A stretch of DNA of 64,000 nucleotides from Setoptus koraiensis. Lineage: Eukaryota; Animalia; Arthropoda. This document shows, one piece after another, positions 2,641 to 42,988 of the stretch. Location of the stretch: positions 12,462,001 through 12,526,000 of the forward strand of contig CM106585.1 of assembly GCA_048013815.1 (NCBI GenBank), written 5' to 3'. Positions within the stretch are counted from its first letter, which is position 1; every line of letters begins with the position of its first letter. Both the position numbers and the translations under genes were made by a program. The notes beneath the pieces were generated by a model, which was not told the DNA's origin, did not search any database, and worked only from the letters and a program-made list of their open reading frames with translations.

Positions 2641-4348
2641 CACTTTATGCTAATCATCTGTCTTAAATTGCACCCTGATTTAAGTAGAGACGCGCGTCAC
2701 ACTAGGCCCAAACTGGTTACGGGCGATGGCAAGCCCAGCCTAGCTAACTAGGGTTTTCTTTGTTTCGCAAAAATTGCCAAACAGTTACGCGTTGTGTCCG
2801 GTGAGAGTGGTCAGACTCTTTTAGTGTTTGTATGGATAGTGTGGCCAATAATGCCTGGCGTTGTTTGTGTGACATTCAAATAGTGTTCATCTAATAGCAG
2901 TGAGTTTTTGGAGAGAGAAAAAAAAACACGCTAGTCCAATTAGCCGTCGTTTGCATCTCAGATCGGACTGCTCTTCTAATTGTGACGTTATTGTTGTTGT
3001 TATTGTTGTTGCTGCTGCTATTATTATATTGATCGTGTAATGGCTCGTTGATGGGACTCGCGTCGCACCTCAACGCATCTGATTATAATGAAATAATTTT
3101 GCTGGCGACACTACATACCACGCCAAGACGCAGACTGGCACGAGGTTGTTGTCTTGTTGCTCTGTAGTCGTTGGCTGCGTGAACAGTTTGCAATGGTTGG
3201 CATAGTCAAAGTTGTTGCTTTAGTTCGGACAGAATATTCTCGGCTCTAGTTTCAGTTTGTATTGCTGGGGCCGCCGACTGGCACTCGTCGCAAACAAACT
3301 CGCTGGAAAAAGTTGCTATAGTCAATTGTTTCCTGTGGCGACTCGCTCAATAAATTCATGTCGTCAGTAGCTGATGATAGTTCACGAAACAAACGGTTGG
3401 CTGGCCAAATCATATGTATGGCATGTATGGTATTAGGGGCGCACAACACGGCACATATAAACATATGTATATTGCATGCGACAAACAAACATAATGCGAG
3501 TTGATTATGTCGTTGTTGCCAACTTTATATCTCTCTTTCTGCTGCATATATATGGAATATATCTTTCTATATATCTGTGTGGGTATTATGTGTATTTGTG
3601 TGTGTATGTGTGTGTGTCTACTGTGACAGAGATCTCTCAAACAAGATTAACAGCGATGCCGGATTTAGATGGATAATAATAATTTAGATGGAATTGTAGC
3701 CTCGGTATCTTGTCTACGGTATCATGTATTCCGTGAAGGAGTGTAACTTAGTTGCACAATTTACTTACGCAATTGATTGGACTTGTCTTCGGCGGTCTTG
3801 GGCGCCGTTCATCAGTGGCGTTCGGCGACTACTAAACTGAATGCACACTTACACACACGAACACACACACACACACACACACACACCCAGTGAGTCACTC
3901 GCGAGTCGCGACAAACAAGTGCACCTAGCGACCCAGTAGCGACCATTCGGCGGCATGCAAATACTGCCGACTACTGCTAGTAATAATACTATTTTTTAAT
4001 AATAATCATTCACTAAGCTGCCTCATTCAATAACATACTGCTCTGGCTTTAATAGTGTAGCAAGTATGTCTGCAAATATACCACTACGATGGCAACAACA
4101 ACAAACAACAACGACACAATATGCAAACGACGTTCTCGTCTCCGTCGTCGTTGTTGTCGTCGTCTTCTGATCCTCTCGGTTAGTCTCTGATAGATTGTAG
4201 CTCGCTCAGCGCTAGACAGTTTTCCAGTTTTTAGCTCAAATTTTAGTTTCCACGGCTGCATGCTTCATGTTGTTGCTGTGTCTATAGATGTTGTTGGCTT
4301 CTAGTTACATTCATCACGCAACTACTTAACTTGATGTTCTTGGCGACA

Positions 4349-4350
<2 letters not shown>

Positions 4351-4421
<71 letters not shown>

Positions 4422-4458
4422 ACACTCACACACACACACACACACACGCACACACACA
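4351..4458. repeat. Compound (CT)n-(CA)n microsatellite
   Basis: About 20 CT units directly followed by an imperfect CA tract. Other dinucleotide tracts lie at 3861-3886 (AC) and 4985-5020 (GA). Confidence 0.95.
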
Positions 4459-4981
4459 ATCACAGTTCAAGTTGAGGTCGCTAAAACTAAATTGGTTTCC
4501 AGCAGACAGATTAGTGAAACATCATTCGCTGAGACGCATCAATGTGGATGGTGCGTAAATTGTATGAATGGCCCGCAAATATGCTGATGATAGTATGAAT
4601 GACAAGTGCACGCGAGAACGACCAGATAAGAATGGATAGATAAATTGAGATTATTATTAAATTGTTTCCAACACGACAATCAAGATGGTTGCTGTTGCCG
4701 ACTAGATGCGCGCACAAACAACCATCTCCAATCAAATGATTCAGCCCGTGTAATTGCGACCAATAATAATAATACAATCGCATTTAAACAGTACAGGCAA
4801 CGTCAATTTTAATATAGTTAGGTGACACTCGCTCTGCAATCATCTAGGGGTTCATCGTGTCGCATAATTAACTATTTGCATATGACAATGTGCCATTTCA
4901 ATTTGTCGTCACTTGGCGGCTCCGATCTCACTTCTCGGAATAGTTCGAACAATCGGAACATGACTAGTCTAGTCTAAAGAT

Positions 4982-5022
<41 letters not shown>

Positions 5023-6666
5023 AGCGAACAACCAATAATTGTGATTGGACTGACAGAGCCCATATGAAGGAATAACAAACAGTCTGGGCCGTAGGCGCGA
5101 CAATGTCCAACGATAGATATAACTGTAAAGTAGATTGATTCTGAGTGAATAATTCATTCTTGTCGCGATATGCGTGCCAACATTGACAACGTTATTGTCA
5201 TGATCAATTTCATTATTAATTTCATTTAGACGTTGCTGTTGATGTCGTTGTCGGTAGTCGCAGTTGACAACTCCAAGCATCATCATCGTACATCTACACA
5301 GTTGAATTATTTACTAGCATCCAATAAATGTCATACCGTGTGATGCATATCATTCACAACCGTCGCTACCGGTACATTGTTGGACGAATTTTGCACTTTT
5401 CATACATTTATTGAATAACTTTATTGGCAAGGCAGTCAAATGGCTATAATTAAAAATTATCGCGTACAAATACGTCGGTATGGCAGTAACTGTTAGTTCT
5501 GTTCGGATATATTTACTGGCAGTAGCGTCGCAGTTGTGTCGCTCGTCAGGCGTTGCCAGGCTCCTCAGCTGGCCTCACCCGATCTATTATTGTGAAGCAA
5601 CAAATTCTGCTGACATAATTCCATCGTACTCTGCTAACTACTCTATCGTGACTTGACACTAATCCTCATCTTTGTGCATTGTCCACACTAAGCTGTCAAT
5701 TTATGAGTGCGCCGGCCGACCTCACTCTCGGCCTCAATACATTATGTCCGTCGGAGCATTCGTCTGGTTGCAAGAAATTGTGACGATGCGGCACAATTAC
5801 GCGTCGATAAAGAATTGATTGGAGGCGACGGTAGAGAAAAGAGGGTGGGGAATTCAACTCCATTTGAGACATCAAGTGGCAATTGAGAAGTGTCCTGCTC
5901 CAGTTTCACCCAGTCAGCAGTGGTAGTGACACCATTTCTCGTCCTCGCAAACATTGGCTGCTAATGCTTGTGATCTTTTTACTGGCCAGATTATAGAGCA
6001 AGTTTTCTAGTTGCATATCCAATTGGATTGGTGGCTGTCACGACATCAACGAGGCCCCAACTATCGGCGAGCACAACCATACTAGTACAGAAGGTAGTAG
6101 AAGTTTGTGCACACACATTCAAGCCTTATCAATGACAACGACTGTAAACACAAGAGCAATATACGGGCCTAGTTACCCAAAAGAGCCCCTTTTTTTTGTT
6201 GGCACCATGACTACAGCGCACTAAAATAGACATTTGTTTGCGATCACTAAAAGCAGATAAACACGTAGTTGGGAGCAATAGGGGCACTTGTGACAGTGAC
6301 CCAACTTTCAGCTGGTTAGAGGCAGCAAGTAGACCAGATAATATACTAATGAGCTGTATCGATGCATTTCAAACATGCAATGTACTTCCAATATTATTGA
6401 TTTCCATGTAGCCCATGGTCGAGCCGTAGTTGATAGTGGTGGCGGAGTCACATACATACAAACACACTTACATGCACACAGAATGCCTAAAGTAGATATT
6501 CAGATAATTTCGGACGCTTCTAGTGGCGATATCTGTGTGCATTTAGGTGTCACGCACCTATTATGCTGAAAGGACAGACAAACATGGACAATTGGTGACA
6601 TGTTGGAGTATTGTTGTTAGTTGTTATTATTTTATTGGCATTTGGTGCATGCTCAATTAAGTTAAT

Positions 6667-7290
6667 CTAGGACCTTGGTCTTTCCTTCTTTTCCTTATAT
6701 AAGGCTAAGAGAGATACATTGGCCACCTTGACTATCTTGAAACGTACACCTGGAATATCACCCACGGCGTGACCTTTACGACCGAAACCGGCCACTAAAA
6801 CTTCGTCATTGTCTTCGATGTAATTTAGACAACCGTCACGAGGCACAAATGCTGTGATCTTTTTACCGTTCTTAATCAATTGAACACGGACACATTTACG
6901 AATGGCCGAGTTAGGTTGCTTAGCACCAATACCGACTTTCTCGAGAACAATTCCTTTAGCGTGGGAAGCACCACCAAAAGGATTTGATTTCCATCTGGTA
7001 CCCGAATGTGCTTTCTTGTAGTCCTTGTCGGCCCATCTTTGTTCGCGACGATGATTCTTGTGCTTACGGGCGGTTCTTAATCCCTTTGGTTTACCTAATT
7101 ATTTATATATTTTTTTCACCATATGGGGGACAGTTAATGAAAACGGTGATTAGTATTTAAAAATCTCTGAAATAACATTCGGTTAGGGGCTGACATGAGC
7201 ACCGAAGCAAAGCAATTATTACTTTGTTCATTAGCCAATTAATTGTCTCCACAGAGATGAATATTCCTATAAGTAAGGTGACTTACCCAT
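6667..7290 (-). CDS. RPS23: 40S ribosomal protein S23 (uS12); join(7290..7287, 7094..6667), 143 aa
   Basis: ATG G|gtaagt donor and aattag|GT AAA acceptor give [13 protein letters not shown]...[21 protein letters not shown]...KKERPRS*. The CDS is 432 nt, the canonical length. Confidence 0.98.
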
Positions 7291-38442: not shown

Positions 38443-39341
38443 CTAATGGTTGGCCGCTTGGTGGTGGCCCGAGCGCGTGCCGCAACCGCTGATGCAAGCA
38501 ATGAGAGCCAGCGGCACGCTCAATGCCATGGCCAGCACCAGTGTGCCGAGAACCAAAAATATGGGCCCGTAAGCGATTCGCAGGCAGCCCATTTGGCTGT
38601 CACTGTGCGAACAATACTGATTGTCTGATCCGTCGACCTCTGGATCCTTGCAACACGATTTAGCAAAACTGTGCCGGTTCGGCGACAGCGGTAGCCAGTC
38701 TTTGGGGCTGCTGAGGCCGCAGCACACGTGATCCGCTTGCAGTTGGTCCCAAAATGCGTTCACTGTGCTGTTGTCGCCCTTCTTGAAACTGTATTTCGAC
38801 AGGCTGCTGTTTAGCTTTTCCGAGAACTTTAGCTCTGACTCCTGTTGGCTGGGCAAATACGCCACCACAACCACGCACACCACAATGTTTACCACCAGCA
38901 ACAGGGTGAACTGTCCGTCGGTCCATTTGGTCATCGCGGCCGTTCGCGCCATTTGGTCGATTTGGGCGATTTGGGCGATTTGGGCGAATGGTATCAGTAA
39001 TAAATTAATTATCGGATTAATTAATAAATTAATTAATGATCGGGCGCATGAACAAAGACTGGCTCGTCTGGAGCGGGGCTACTTACGAAACGGATGACGC
39101 GCTTGTTGTTGTAGAAGGCGCCCAGCGAGCCGGCCACTGTCAGCACTATCAAGTAGACGGCACAAGCGAACAGGTAGCTCAGGTTCTGCTTCCAATCGGG
39201 CGCGTCCAATTGCGTGTAAAACGAGCGCACCCAACTCACCTCGGCGGCCAGACCGACGGCCACTATGCCCAACAGGAGACTGCCGAAGAACAGCAGCAAC
39301 CTGAAGGAGCCCGTGATACAGGTGAAGATTTGTTGGCACAT
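38443..39341 (-). CDS. Divergent tetraspanin A; join(39341..39087, 38910..38443), 240 aa
   Basis: Four hydrophobic helices. EC2 has FWDQLQADHVCCG...DW...SCC...C...GC, the tetraspanin CCG signature with 6 Cys. Phase-0 intron TTC|gtaagt...gacag|TTC. Confidence 0.9.
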
Positions 39342-40292
39342 TTTGCTGGGGGGCGTTGAGGATTTCGCGCTTGGCGCTTGGCCGTTGTCGCCGGACACAA
39401 AAACACGGAGTTACAATTTCGCAGTTGCAGATTCTCGTCGATCGTTTGCTCTCGATAATGGTCGGCAATAATTAATAATTATTAATACTTGTTGAATCAC
39501 TCGTGCGTCCAAAGGCAATGCGTGCTCAAAGTGTCACAGTGTCAGCGAGTTACAATTAGCAACACTGAAGTGGGCAGCTCATAATCCTGATTGGTTAAAT
39601 ACTGAAATGCTGTTGTCGTTGTTGTCGTCGTTGTTGTCGTTGTTGCTGTCGTGGTTGTTTGATGAGCGATTCATCAATCAAACGCGATGTGAAATGTGAT
39701 GTGTTTGCAATTTTACTTTGTTGTTTTCGTTTCGGGCGAGCATGTATGATTTGTGTAATCCGATGAAGTGACTTGTGAGAGAGATAAACGCCGCTGCACA
39801 TTTGTTTACATGACTATAAACGATGACTCAACTGCGATGCTTATCAGCGCCGGCTAACAATAATTAACCATCTGCCATAGCCATCAGTAATGAGTCAGAC
39901 GAGAGAAACGATGATACGATTATTGCATTAGAATGACTTTATTGCATGAGTGTCGTACGAACACCATGGTGCAACAAATAGCATAACAATAGCAATGACA
40001 CAATTATAAGCGACCAACCATGAGATTCTCTAGCGAGCTGACACACAAATCAGCGCAACTCCAGACAAACAACAAACACTGCCAGTAGCTACCGTGAGTA
40101 GCTTGCCAGTGAATCATTTCAATCAGTGTACGATAATGTGACACAGTTGGCATTTCGCAGGCACGTATCGGCGCCACATTGCGGATATTGCCCAACCTGG
40201 TTCGACAGGCACCCTTTGCGCCGATTACTTATCAATTGTCGCAACGAAACTTTTTCACATTTTACGCAAGCTAACAAGTGGCAAGTGGGCCT

Positions 40293-40350
40293 CAAATTAG
40301 TGTGTCTAACAAGCCAAATTAGCGTGTCTACAAACCAAATTAGTGTTTAA
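40293..40350. repeat. Three copies of a 21-22-bp unit (CAAATTAG[T/C]GTGTCTA...)
   Basis: Copies start at 40293, 40315 and 40336. Confidence 0.7.
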
Positions 40351-40596
40351 GTGAGTGACCGTATGATAACAACAGCGACAGTAATTGTCAGTTTAATGCA
40401 ACAGTGTCCGCGCAACAAGCCCGCGCTCATGCAAACATTGGCCAGAGAGAAAGTCGCCAGAAAAGTGTGCAACATCCTGCAAAATCAATCACAGATTCAT
40501 TGATTGACTGATCACAACCGTGGCATTGAAAAAGGTGCCAATTCTTTGTTTATCTCGATTCTTTTTTTCACCTGGACACAAGCGAGCAGAGCGCCG

Positions 40597-42988
40597 TCAG
40601 TAGAATTGGTGCGACTTGTAGCCACTTATGAGGCTCAGCACACTTAAAAAGGCGCTTGCGGTGGCCGCCAACAAGACGGTCAGGTTTATGAGTACCACTG
40701 GCAGCTCAATGCGATGGTAGCAACTCGAATAGGAACTAGGCGACTCCGTGCAGTGACCGTACTCACTTCCGTCGGATCTAATTCCCACGCTTGGTTGCGG
40801 GCAGCACGATTTTGGATAGGAATTTTTGTCGGGCGACAAAACGAGCCATTCGTTTTTGTTGTCCAGACCGCAACACTCGAGTCTGCTCTGCAGATTGTCC
40901 CAAAATTGGGTGACATTCCTCTCAATATTCTTCGTAGAGTCTTGCCCTCCATCCCTGTGCGCTTCCTCCGAGGCTTGTGGTTGGGGTTGTTGTCCGCCCT
41001 CAGTGCCCACCGGAGACGGCGCGGTGGCGCCCCCACTCGAGTCACCATTGACCGGCCGTTGGGGTTCAACAGCAGGGGGCGTGGTGTCCTCATTCGGACC
41101 ACCGCTGACCGGTCGTTCAGCCTGATTCGGCTTCTCCGGCGATTGCGGTTGTGATGGTTGTGACTGCTTCTGCCCTTGACCGTCAGCGGTGCCCCCCGCA
41201 GAAGGCGTGGCGGCCTCATTCGGATCAATGCTGACCGGCCGTTCAGCCTGATTCGGCTTCTCCGGCGATTGCGGTTGTGATGGTTGTGAGTGCTTCTGCC
41301 CTTGACCGTCAGCGGTGCCCCCCGCAGAAGGCGTGGCGGCCTCTTTCGCGTCAGCGGTGACCGACTGTTCAGGCTCCGCCGCAGAAGGCGTGGCGGCCTC
41401 ATTCGCATCAATGCTGACCGGCCGTTCAGCCTGATTCGCTTTCTCCGGCGATTGCGGTTGTGATGGTTGTGAGTGCTTCTGCCCTTGACCGTCAGCGGTG
41501 CCCCCCGCAGAAGGCGTGGCGGCCTCTTTCGCGTCAGCGGTGACCGACTGTTCAGGCTCCGCCGCAGAAGGCGTGGCGGCCTCATTCGGATCACCACTGA
41601 CCGGCCGTTCAGGCTCCGCCGCAGAAGGCGTGGCGGCCTCATTCGCATCAATGCTGACCGGCCGTTCAGCCTGATTCGGCTTCTCCGGCGATTGCGGTTG
41701 TGATGGTTGTGAGTGCTTCTGCCCTTGACCGTCAGCGGTGCCCCCCGCAGAAGGCGTGGCGGCCTCTTTCGCGTCAGCGGTGACCGACTGTTCAGGCTCC
41801 GCCGCAGAAGGCGTGGCGGCCTCATTCGCATCAATGGTGACCGACCGTTCAGCTTGATTCGGCCTCTCCAGAGATTGCGGTTGTGATGGTTGTGACTGCT
41901 TCTGCCCTTGACCGTCAGCGGTGCCCCCCGCAGGAGACGTGGCGGCCTCATTCGCCGGAGGAGGCTTGGTGTCTTGAACCGAATCACTGCCGGCCTGCCC
42001 TCGATCCCTTCTCGCCTGCTTCGGGGATCGCTGCTGCAGTTTCTGTGGAGATGTCTCCTGATTAGGATGTGGTGGTGGTGGTGGTGGCTGTGGTCCAGGA
42101 TGTGGTGGTGGTATCTTTGGAAGTACGGATCGTTGGATGTAACTGGCAAGCACCGCAGCGGGCTCCGTGGCGTCTTTGATTAGCGTGGAAAGTATGCCGC
42201 TATTTCTGGTCAGTCGGATGGTCAAGGTGGCCGGCGACTGCGACGACAACGACTCTTCTTTTGGGGCCTTCTGCTGTCTGTTCGCCGGATCGCTCGTGTG
42301 TGTGGGCCCGGCTCCTGGCAAATTGTCATAGTTAGTTGTGGATGATGCAGCTTTTGGCGTGCTTGTAGCATCACTAATGTGTGACCAATCGTACTTATCC
42401 ATGGCCCCGTCAAACTCATTGCCCGGCTTGATGGTATCTCTGACATTTGGCACGTAATAAACGACAAACAATAAACCCAGTATCATGTTGGCGATGCACA
42501 AGCCTGAAAGCTGCTCACACAAAGGTCAATCATACAAAGTTCAAGGTGTAATTGATTAGATATTGTCCGTAGTTACTAGCTTGGTGGCTTTTTGTAATTA
42601 GAGCGCGAACGCCCGAGGCATTCAGTGCTTAAACGTATAAATGACGAGTGCTTATAAATCCACTTACCAGTTTAATGAGGCCCCTCCGTTTATATATTGA
42701 GCCAGTGCAGCCAATCATGCTCAACAGTAGCAGATAGGCTGCGGTCAATAAGAGCCAAGTGGTGTAAAATCGGGGCCATTGATTGTGCTCGCCGAGAGTG
42801 GAAAAAACATCTCTAAAGCAGACGAGCAATCCTATTATCAGAATGGATATGAAGGCAAGTGACACACTGCCAACTAACAGGATGAGTCGACAGGATTCCC
42901 AAATAAACGAGATTATCCTTTCGAGAAACTGAACTATTCGAGAGAATAATCCATTTATTGAATCGATTATACCCTTGTTGCCTCGCAT
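40597..42988 (-). CDS. Divergent tetraspanin B with a ~480-aa repetitive insertion in EC2; join(42988..42668, 42510..40597), ~744 aa
   Basis: Exon 1 encodes TM1-TM2 (...LSMIGCTGSIYKRRGLIKL|gtaagt). Exon 2 encodes TM3, the insert, FWDNLQSRLECCGLDNKNEW...YPKSCC...C...SC and TM4. Same intron position and phase as tetraspanin A. The start codon could lie further upstream. Confidence 0.88.
41071..41928 (-). repeat. Coding higher-order minisatellite of 126-nt (A) and 57-nt (B) units in the order A-B-A-B'-B-A-B-A-A
   Basis: A = GGTADGQGQK[H/Q]SQPSQPQSPEKPNQAERPVSIDANEAATPSA (42 aa). B = AEPEQSVTADAKEAATPSA and B' = AEPERPVSGDPNEAATPSA (19 aa each). 5x126 + 4x57 = 858 nt. Confidence 0.95.

Follow-up and report, generated by a model that had tools for sequence, protein, structure and literature searches.

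A mite tetraspanin with a long, predicted disordered insert between helices A and B of its second extracellular loop

The subject of this work is a 64,000-nucleotide stretch of the genome of the eriophyoid mite Setoptus koraiensis (GenBank assembly GCA_048013815.1, contig CM106585.1, positions 12,462,001 to 12,526,000 of the forward strand). We refer to the whole stretch as the window, and coordinates given without a further label are positions within it. Two adjacent tetraspanin genes, each with two exons, can be read from the minus strand. We call them A (38443-39341) and B (40597-42988). Translation of A from the ATG at 39341 gives a protein of 240 residues, 85 from exon 1 and 155 from exon 2. 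The ATG of B, at 42988, opens a protein of 744 residues (107 and 637), whereas tetraspanins normally comprise 200-300 residues (PMC8097176). Between a KY pair and a V..FW motif in the second extracellular loop (EC2), there are 9 residues in A and 492 in B, and the insert of B contains no cysteine. A sequence-only reading of this DNA had given these residue counts, which were exact on recount. It had also described the genes as tandem tetraspanins; this was borne out, with exact gene limits and a positive Pfam check for the second exon of both. Judging by their sequence, there is a high probability that the two genes and the coding insert of B are real.

Note that searches, alignments and fold prediction were done for each exon separately, and that from these parts we infer the whole-protein topology of A and B. 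Exon 1 of A (39087-39341, minus strand, as are all features of the two genes below) encodes 85 residues: the initiating ATG, transmembrane segment 1 (TM1), a small extracellular loop, TM2 and a short inner loop. It contains two hydrophobic segments, has a partial and weak match to PF00335 (E = 0.075) and stops at a CGTTTC/gtaagt donor at 39086. The intron is 176 nucleotides (nt) long (38911-39086; phase 0, GTAAGT...CAG), with its acceptor CAG at 38911. A short (CGCCCAAAT)n-like microsatellite lies within it at 38953-38995 (minus strand), directly before the acceptor region. Exon 2 of A (38443-38910; 155 residues and the stop codon) provides TM3, an EC2 with a 9-residue turn between helices A and B, a CCG motif and six cysteines, and TM4. 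This exon matches PF00335 at 1.7e-14.

Exon 1 of B (42668-42988) encodes 107 residues, comprising the ATG, an N-terminal tail, TM1, a small loop and TM2. It too holds two hydrophobic segments, with a partial PF00335 match (4.5e-4) and an AAACTG/gtaagt donor at 42667. The 157-nt intron (42511-42667) is again in phase 0 and runs from GTAAGT to CAG; the offset of the acceptor CAG, at 42511, was checked by script. Exon 2 then starts with TM3 and helix A (42391-42510), ending at the KY of a KYDW motif. The cysteine-free insert of 492 residues follows (40915-42390), occupying the turn between helices A and B of EC2. The rest of the exon (40597-40914) encodes the EC2 core, consisting of helix B, CCG, PKSCC and two further cysteines, then TM4, a short tail and the stop codon. 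The PF00335 match for exon 2 of B is 1.5e-9. In both genes the intron falls after the short inner loop and before TM3. The shared phase-0 intron before TM3, claimed by the sequence-only reading, is thus present in the sequence.

Both second exons exceed the Pfam cut-off for PF00335 of 32.1 bits, with 54.5 bits for A and 38.3 bits for B. The matches of the first exons are partial and below the cut-off in A and B, as expected for pieces. A Kyte-Doolittle scan found two TM-like segments in each exon of both genes and none in the insert of B. The CCG motif, KSCC and two further cysteines occur in both proteins, in columns that vary little or not at all across an alignment of 20 sequences. When a profile of the mite family was compared with solved tetraspanins, TSPAN7 was the best match (3.8e-26), followed by CD53, UPK1B, TSPAN15, CD63, CD9, CD81 and PRPH2, among 16 tetraspanin chains in all. 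A and B share with the tetraspanin family, of which TSPAN7 is the nearest solved member by profile, four hydrophobic segments (two and two by exon), CCG, PxSCC and two further cysteines. Helix A of TSPAN7, like that of B, ends in a Y-D/N motif.

The insert of B has three parts. About 145 residues of unique sequence come first, then about 305 residues of tandem modules, and then a tail of about 45 residues that runs into an N-x-T sequon and helix B. Its commonest residues are Pro (14.6%), Ala (14.2%), Ser (11.4%), Gln (10.8%), Gly (7.5%), Glu (7.5%) and Thr (7.3%). Together, Ala, Glu, Gly, Pro, Ser and Thr make up 62.6% (73.4% with Gln), against 7.9% for hydrophobic residues, and the chain carries a net charge of about -23. 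No N-x-S/T sequon was found within the 492 residues. The N-x-T sequon directly before helix B (40925-40915, minus strand) reads NVT in B and in its orthologue P0002 (described below), NST in A, and NAT in others, including P0005 and the paralogues at locus L008. Judging by this recurrence, the mite tetraspanin group probably has a conserved N-glycosylation site here.

The tandem modules form an in-frame minisatellite array at about 41041-41955, with a GC content of about 64%, defined by Tandem Repeats Finder (TRF) and a module map. The modules are 19, 42 and 61 residues long, and the periods detected by TRF (57, 126, 183 and 240 nt) are all multiples of 3. Matches to the 183-nt unit elsewhere in the genome were sought and none was found, all being confined to its own array. 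We could hence rule out that the unit derives from a dispersed repeat. The +1 frame of the repeats, on the same strand, contains an open reading frame (ORF) of 487 codons (40686-42149, minus strand) that is rich in Arg, Leu and Pro. Its composition indicates that it is a by-product of GC-rich periodic sequence and not a gene.

Upstream of the array, the insert contains a hydrophobic island (42120-42230; LTIRL... to ...SVLPKI), followed by a poly-proline run. It was located by scoring hydrophobicity in blocks of 50 residues, reaches 28% hydrophobic residues and coincides with a weak helix predicted at exon 2 residues 111-128. After the island the sequence reads PPPHPGPQPPPPPPHP, and the basic motifs RLTR and RRDR are close by. 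From these features, the region could be a docking or processing site.

The structure of exon 2 of B was predicted with AlphaFold2, for this exon only and from the alignment of 20 sequences. TM3 was modelled as a helix at exon 2 residues 2-19, with mean predicted local distance difference test (pLDDT) scores of 75 and 81 in blocks of 10 residues, and helix A at residues 23-38 (block means of 68 and 90). From residue 49 to about 520, pLDDT is below 50 nearly throughout, and the weak helix mentioned above is the only one. Helix B, at residues 523-544, and all that follows, that is the rest of EC2 and TM4, is modelled with pLDDT of 84-96; helices are also present at 597-636. All of the best 12 matches listed by Foldseek are tetraspanins, among them CD82, CD63, Sm-TSP-2, TSPAN15, UPK1B and TSPAN10. 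The matches are nevertheless weak, with E-values of 0.06-1.5 and low TM-scores, since 75% of the query is disordered. We conclude that the insert of B is predicted to be intrinsically disordered and that the EC2 core is predicted to fold normally.

The model, together with the TSPAN7 alignment, places the insert at the turn between helices A and B, where the sequence-only reading had put it. That reading also described the insert as a stalk, which does not fit the model. The chain leaves and re-enters the folded EC2 at neighbouring points, in a core with pLDDT of 84-96. Since both ends are anchored in folded EC2, the insert is a closed loop and would be unable to raise the domain off the membrane. 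By the usual scaling law, the radius of gyration would be about 8 nm for a free chain of the same length, and somewhat less for a closed loop.

Relatives of the two genes were sought in a full HMMER scan, in which a profile of A and B was run against 1.84 billion representatives. There were two strong matches. The first, P0001, is A-like: an exon-2 ORF with a short loop that is 53% identical to A over 144 residues. The second, P0002, is B-like: an uninterrupted ORF of 304 residues, from a Logan assembly, that covers TM3 and helix A, an insert, the EC2 core and TM4. It is 53% identical to B in TM3 and helix A, and 61% identical in the EC2 core and TM4. Between KYDW and V..FW, P0002 has about 170 residues that are cysteine-free and rich in Ala, Ser, Thr and Pro. 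Word-index protein searches with the EC2 core of B (352-1121 residue class), exon 2 of A and P0002 gave nothing beyond P0002, within the limits set by word sharing and the length window. No relatives were found in a scan of JGI metagenomes, and matches in the ESM Atlas were ordinary tetraspanin clusters only (181-197 residues, scores below 0.9).

A tree of EC2 cores groups A with P0001 (support 96/96) and B with P0002 (95/99). Because both groups are well supported, the split between A and B is older than that between the two source species. P0008 and P0024, which appeared beside B and A in the tree, were rejected as neighbours; they have long branches only and are unrelated in detail. The origin of A and B by tandem duplication, as proposed in the sequence-only reading, is a more mixed case. 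The genes lie next to each other on one strand, and their products share 40% identity across 98 residues of the EC2 core and TM4 (E = 5e-20). They are also reciprocal best hits in the genome at 39-40%, but narrowly, since another paralogue is equally near to B (40%). On the other side, a sister grouping of A and B is not resolved in the tree, and each gene has its own orthologue. The shared intron, offered as evidence for the duplication, does not help. A phase-0 GTAAGT intron before TM3 is present in all four other paralogues examined, in three loci (L007, L008 with two genes, and L010), with lengths of 106-125 nt. Hence, its presence in A and B is no evidence that one arose from the other. 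Given this distribution, the intron seems to be ancestral and to have been kept in a lineage otherwise poor in introns. Locus L008 (G000:C1:3813000-3817000) contains two near-identical tetraspanin genes, separated by about 1.7 kb, whose introns have identical ends. Their sequences mark the pair as the product of a very recent tandem duplication.

The inserts of B and P0002 share the motif LTIRL, located 53 and 57 residues after KYDW, respectively. Chance alone yields an exact shared 5-mer in 16% of shuffles, and only the matching offset of LTIRL is suggestive. By eye, P0002 also has one segment resembling the amplified unit of B (P.K.NQ..PVS.DA), a likeness that is no more than suggestive.

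We compared these loops with those of other tetraspanins. Among 146 CCG motifs with flanking TM segments, taken from the 150 closest library relatives, the distance from TM3 to CCG is 41 residues at the median and 132 at most. The distance in B is about 528. In P0002 it is about 215, although this sequence is outside the count since it starts inside TM3. Seven library sequences (P0004, P0011, P0014, P0022, P0026, P0037 and P0043), which by length might have been taken for stalked relatives, were rejected; each is a gene model in which two or three ordinary tetraspanins are fused. Indeed, in the survey for longer EC2 regions among library relatives, every longer match was a fused gene model. 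Smaller extensions do occur. The YD/YN-type motif that closes helix A is separated from CCG by 45-63 residues in the related mite group L007 and by 58-103 in another, L009 (eight sequences), compared with 21-35 in most others.

The same genome also encodes a giant tetraspanin (L001; G000:C1:20216000-20224000, plus strand ORFs 53-2581 and 3726-6677). It has about 450 low-complexity residues between SCC and the next cysteine of EC2, together with low-complexity tails of about 600 residues at the N-terminus and about 400 at the C-terminus. Like B, it carries a low-complexity insert in an extracellular loop of an otherwise normal folded protein. The two inserts differ in kind. That of L001 is rich in Ser, Asn, Gln and Ala, mostly non-periodic, and in a different loop of EC2; that of B is a GC-rich, strictly periodic, young minisatellite set on an older insert. 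Hence, B is not a one-off: about 170 residues occupy this place in P0002, two related groups have spacings of 45-103, and L001 has about 450 residues elsewhere in EC2. The sequence-only reading had seen in B a different kind of molecule, whereas these data place it at the extreme of a graded, lineage-wide tendency in mite genes. Its further remark, that the architecture had not been described, agrees with our literature search, in which no paper on such tetraspanins was found in the library covered.

Better known members of the family also have an EC2 larger than usual, which carries out their specialised task. In peripherin-2/ROM1 and the uroplakins (UPK1A/B), the extra EC2 sequence is folded, contains cysteines, measures tens of residues and serves oligomerisation or partner binding. 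The extra sequence of B, by contrast, is about 490 residues long, cysteine-free and predicted to be disordered.

On balance, we favour the view that B is an intact, translated tetraspanin in which a permissive turn of EC2 holds an old polymer loop, predicted to be disordered and amplified not long ago, that would behave as a steric brush. An insert of about 170 residues would already have been present before the split from the lineage that gave P0002. One segment of it would then have expanded very recently, by in-frame slippage or unequal exchange, to the roughly 305 residues of 19-, 42- and 61-residue modules. With both ends in folded EC2, the chain would form a closed polymer loop, seen as a hydrated cloud several nm across on top of an EC2 of about 3-4 nm. 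The loop, possibly made stiffer by some O-glycans, would serve not as a stalk but as a steric or entropic brush that covers the tetraspanin and the proteins next to it in the membrane. Selection on the exact length of the insert is probably weak, and individuals of the population may differ in it.

In line with a recent local expansion, the three 61-residue units vary at only 3 of 183 nt columns (the long units are 97-99% identical), and the unit is confined to this locus. Other observations weigh against this account. Variable columns are evenly spread over the three codon positions, with counts of 6/5/6 across the 42-residue modules and 5/5/7 across the 19-residue modules. Units that are near-identical, with differences spread evenly in this way, indicate that the array is very young and its sequence unconstrained except in frame; judged from the repeats themselves, it bears no sign of purifying selection beyond frame-keeping. 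Next, homology between the inserts of B and P0002 was not detected by Smith-Waterman alignment, for which 301 and 137 of 1000 shuffles reached the observed score. In addition, a second sense frame on the minus strand is also open inside the GC-rich repeats. Hence, openness inside the array is weak evidence for coding. Finally, the published annotation of Setoptus koraiensis was made without RNA sequencing (PMC11920263).

The lack of any third-codon bias among such similar units, and of significant likeness between the inserts of the two species, speak for an alternative in which the loop is a functionless passenger. The A-B turn would tolerate anything, in a genome that readily gathers low-complexity coding insertions, and the loop would be translated but idle, its length drifting. 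The range of A-B loops across relatives, from about 20 to 500 residues, fits such a picture, as do the low-complexity loop and long tails of the L001 tetraspanin and the 454-residue N-terminal extension of a transferase in the same genome (see below). Drift alone sits less well with the retention of the insert. At least 170 residues have stayed open in both lineages, although their cores are by now only 61% identical, and the proximal part is conserved in length, with LTIRL at offsets 53 and 57. Similarly, group L009 keeps spacings of 58-103 residues in all eight of its sequences. The array also differs from the low complexity around it. It is GC-rich and encodes Pro, Ala, Ser, Gln, Gly and Glu, in contrast to the other long ORFs of the window, which are rich in Ser, Asn, Gln and Ala. 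We consider the passenger alternative unlikely.

Alternatively, the insert might be a true mucin domain with dense, stiff O-glycans. In that case B would be a tetraspanin-mucin hybrid for adhesion, vesicle coating or the interface between mite and plant. "Mucin-like" was the wording of the sequence-only reading, and the insert does resemble the proline/threonine/serine (PTS) domains of mucins in being cysteine-free, tandemly repeated, Pro-rich (14.6%) and extracellular, with a fast-evolving copy number. The difficulty is composition. In the usual definitions of mucin PTS domains, Ser and Thr make up about 40% or more. The insert has 18.7% Ser and Thr overall, and at most 25% in any window of 100 residues. 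Unlike in mucin PTS domains, Ala, Gln, Glu and Gly are abundant, and together reach 40%. The form also differs, a mucin domain being a linear stalk and the insert a closed loop, tethered at both ends within a folded domain. Very young repeats that are not constrained at the codon level do not favour a mucin either. The term is thus poorly suited, and the composition is instead that of an acidic disordered polymer of the PAS/XTEN type. Like entropic bristles and the polymers used in PASylation and XTEN fusions, the insert has 63% Ala, Glu, Gly, Pro, Ser and Thr, 8% hydrophobic residues and a net acidic charge, and is predicted to be disordered. Chains of this type should take the form of hydrated random coils that fill a large volume. 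Note that the comparison is a physical analogy and implies no homology.

Some sugar may still be attached. There are 92 Ser and Thr residues in the insert, of which 42 have Pro at position -1, +1 or +3, and the insert retained by P0002 has 25% Ser and Thr. The genome also encodes enzymes of the right type. The architecture of N-acetylgalactosamine (GalNAc) transferases, with Glycos_transf_2, Glyco_transf_7C and Ricin_B_lectin domains, was verified in two genes, and there are six Ricin-domain loci in the genome. From these counts, some O-glycosylation of the insert is plausible, and we take a full mucin domain to be rather unlikely. One GalNAc-transferase-type gene, at L005:1028-3754 (minus strand; G000:C2:2449000-2454000), has an unusual form of its own: the catalytic domain begins at residue 455, behind the N-terminal extension of 454 residues mentioned above.

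A more ambitious proposal is that the B lineage is a conserved "brush tetraspanin". Here, the loop would be selected and O-glycosylated, and would form a tetraspanin-anchored glycocalyx on certain cells of gall mites, for example gut, salivary or cuticle-secreting cells, or on their vesicles, with the LTIRL/poly-proline island as a docking site. We regard this as decidedly speculative and give it little weight.

We return to whether the insert of B, in the favoured account of a translated polymer loop, is coding at all. Much or all of it might be an unrecognised or alternatively spliced intron, so that the mature protein would be an ordinary tetraspanin of about 250 residues. An annotation made without RNA sequencing would leave room for this, and openness in the repeats, where two sense frames are free of stops, says little. 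The 435-nt non-repeat part of the insert is more informative. Its frame 0, the frame of the gene, lacks stop codons, whereas each of the other five frames has 3-7. No GTRAGT-type donor was found in the insert, whereas every intron examined in the family, that is the two here and four in paralogues, uses GTAAGT and spans 106-176 nt. Every repeat period is divisible by 3. In P0002, about 170 codons are open in the same frame, and an intron would not remain open, in frame, across two lineages so diverged. From these four observations we conclude that the insert is very probably translated, and that the intron alternative is highly improbable.

The published assembly is chromosome-level, with two chromosomes and an N50 of 24.53 Mb (PMC11920263). 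An error of assembly in the copy number of the array, or pseudogene status for B, is scarcely credible: although the PacBio continuous long reads (CLR) came from over 100,000 pooled individuals, in which heterozygosity was 1.13% (PMC11920263), so that the copy number could be a consensus of alleles, the array is below 1 kb and far shorter than the reads, its copies hold distinct variants in a consistent grammar of 19, 42 and 61 residues, the ORF is intact, and the six EC2 cysteines and CCG are conserved with the orthologue.

The usual view of tetraspanins is one of compact organisers, rising only a few nm above the membrane. A disordered loop of 170-490 residues at the tip of EC2, kept over the long term in the B lineage, departs from this picture. 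The turn between helices A and B appears as a naturally permissive insertion site, which may be useful for display or tagging on tetraspanins, for example on extracellular vesicles. B also offers a natural test of how a polymer brush affects tetraspanin packing. A functional role for the loop is hypothesised; should the "brush tetraspanin" proposal be true, it would represent a way of building surface coats so far undescribed for the family. In addition, with a very young in-frame minisatellite set in an old insert, B provides a datable case of loop inflation in a streamlined mite genome. The wider pattern of loop inflation in extracellular proteins may be a more interesting phenomenon than B itself.

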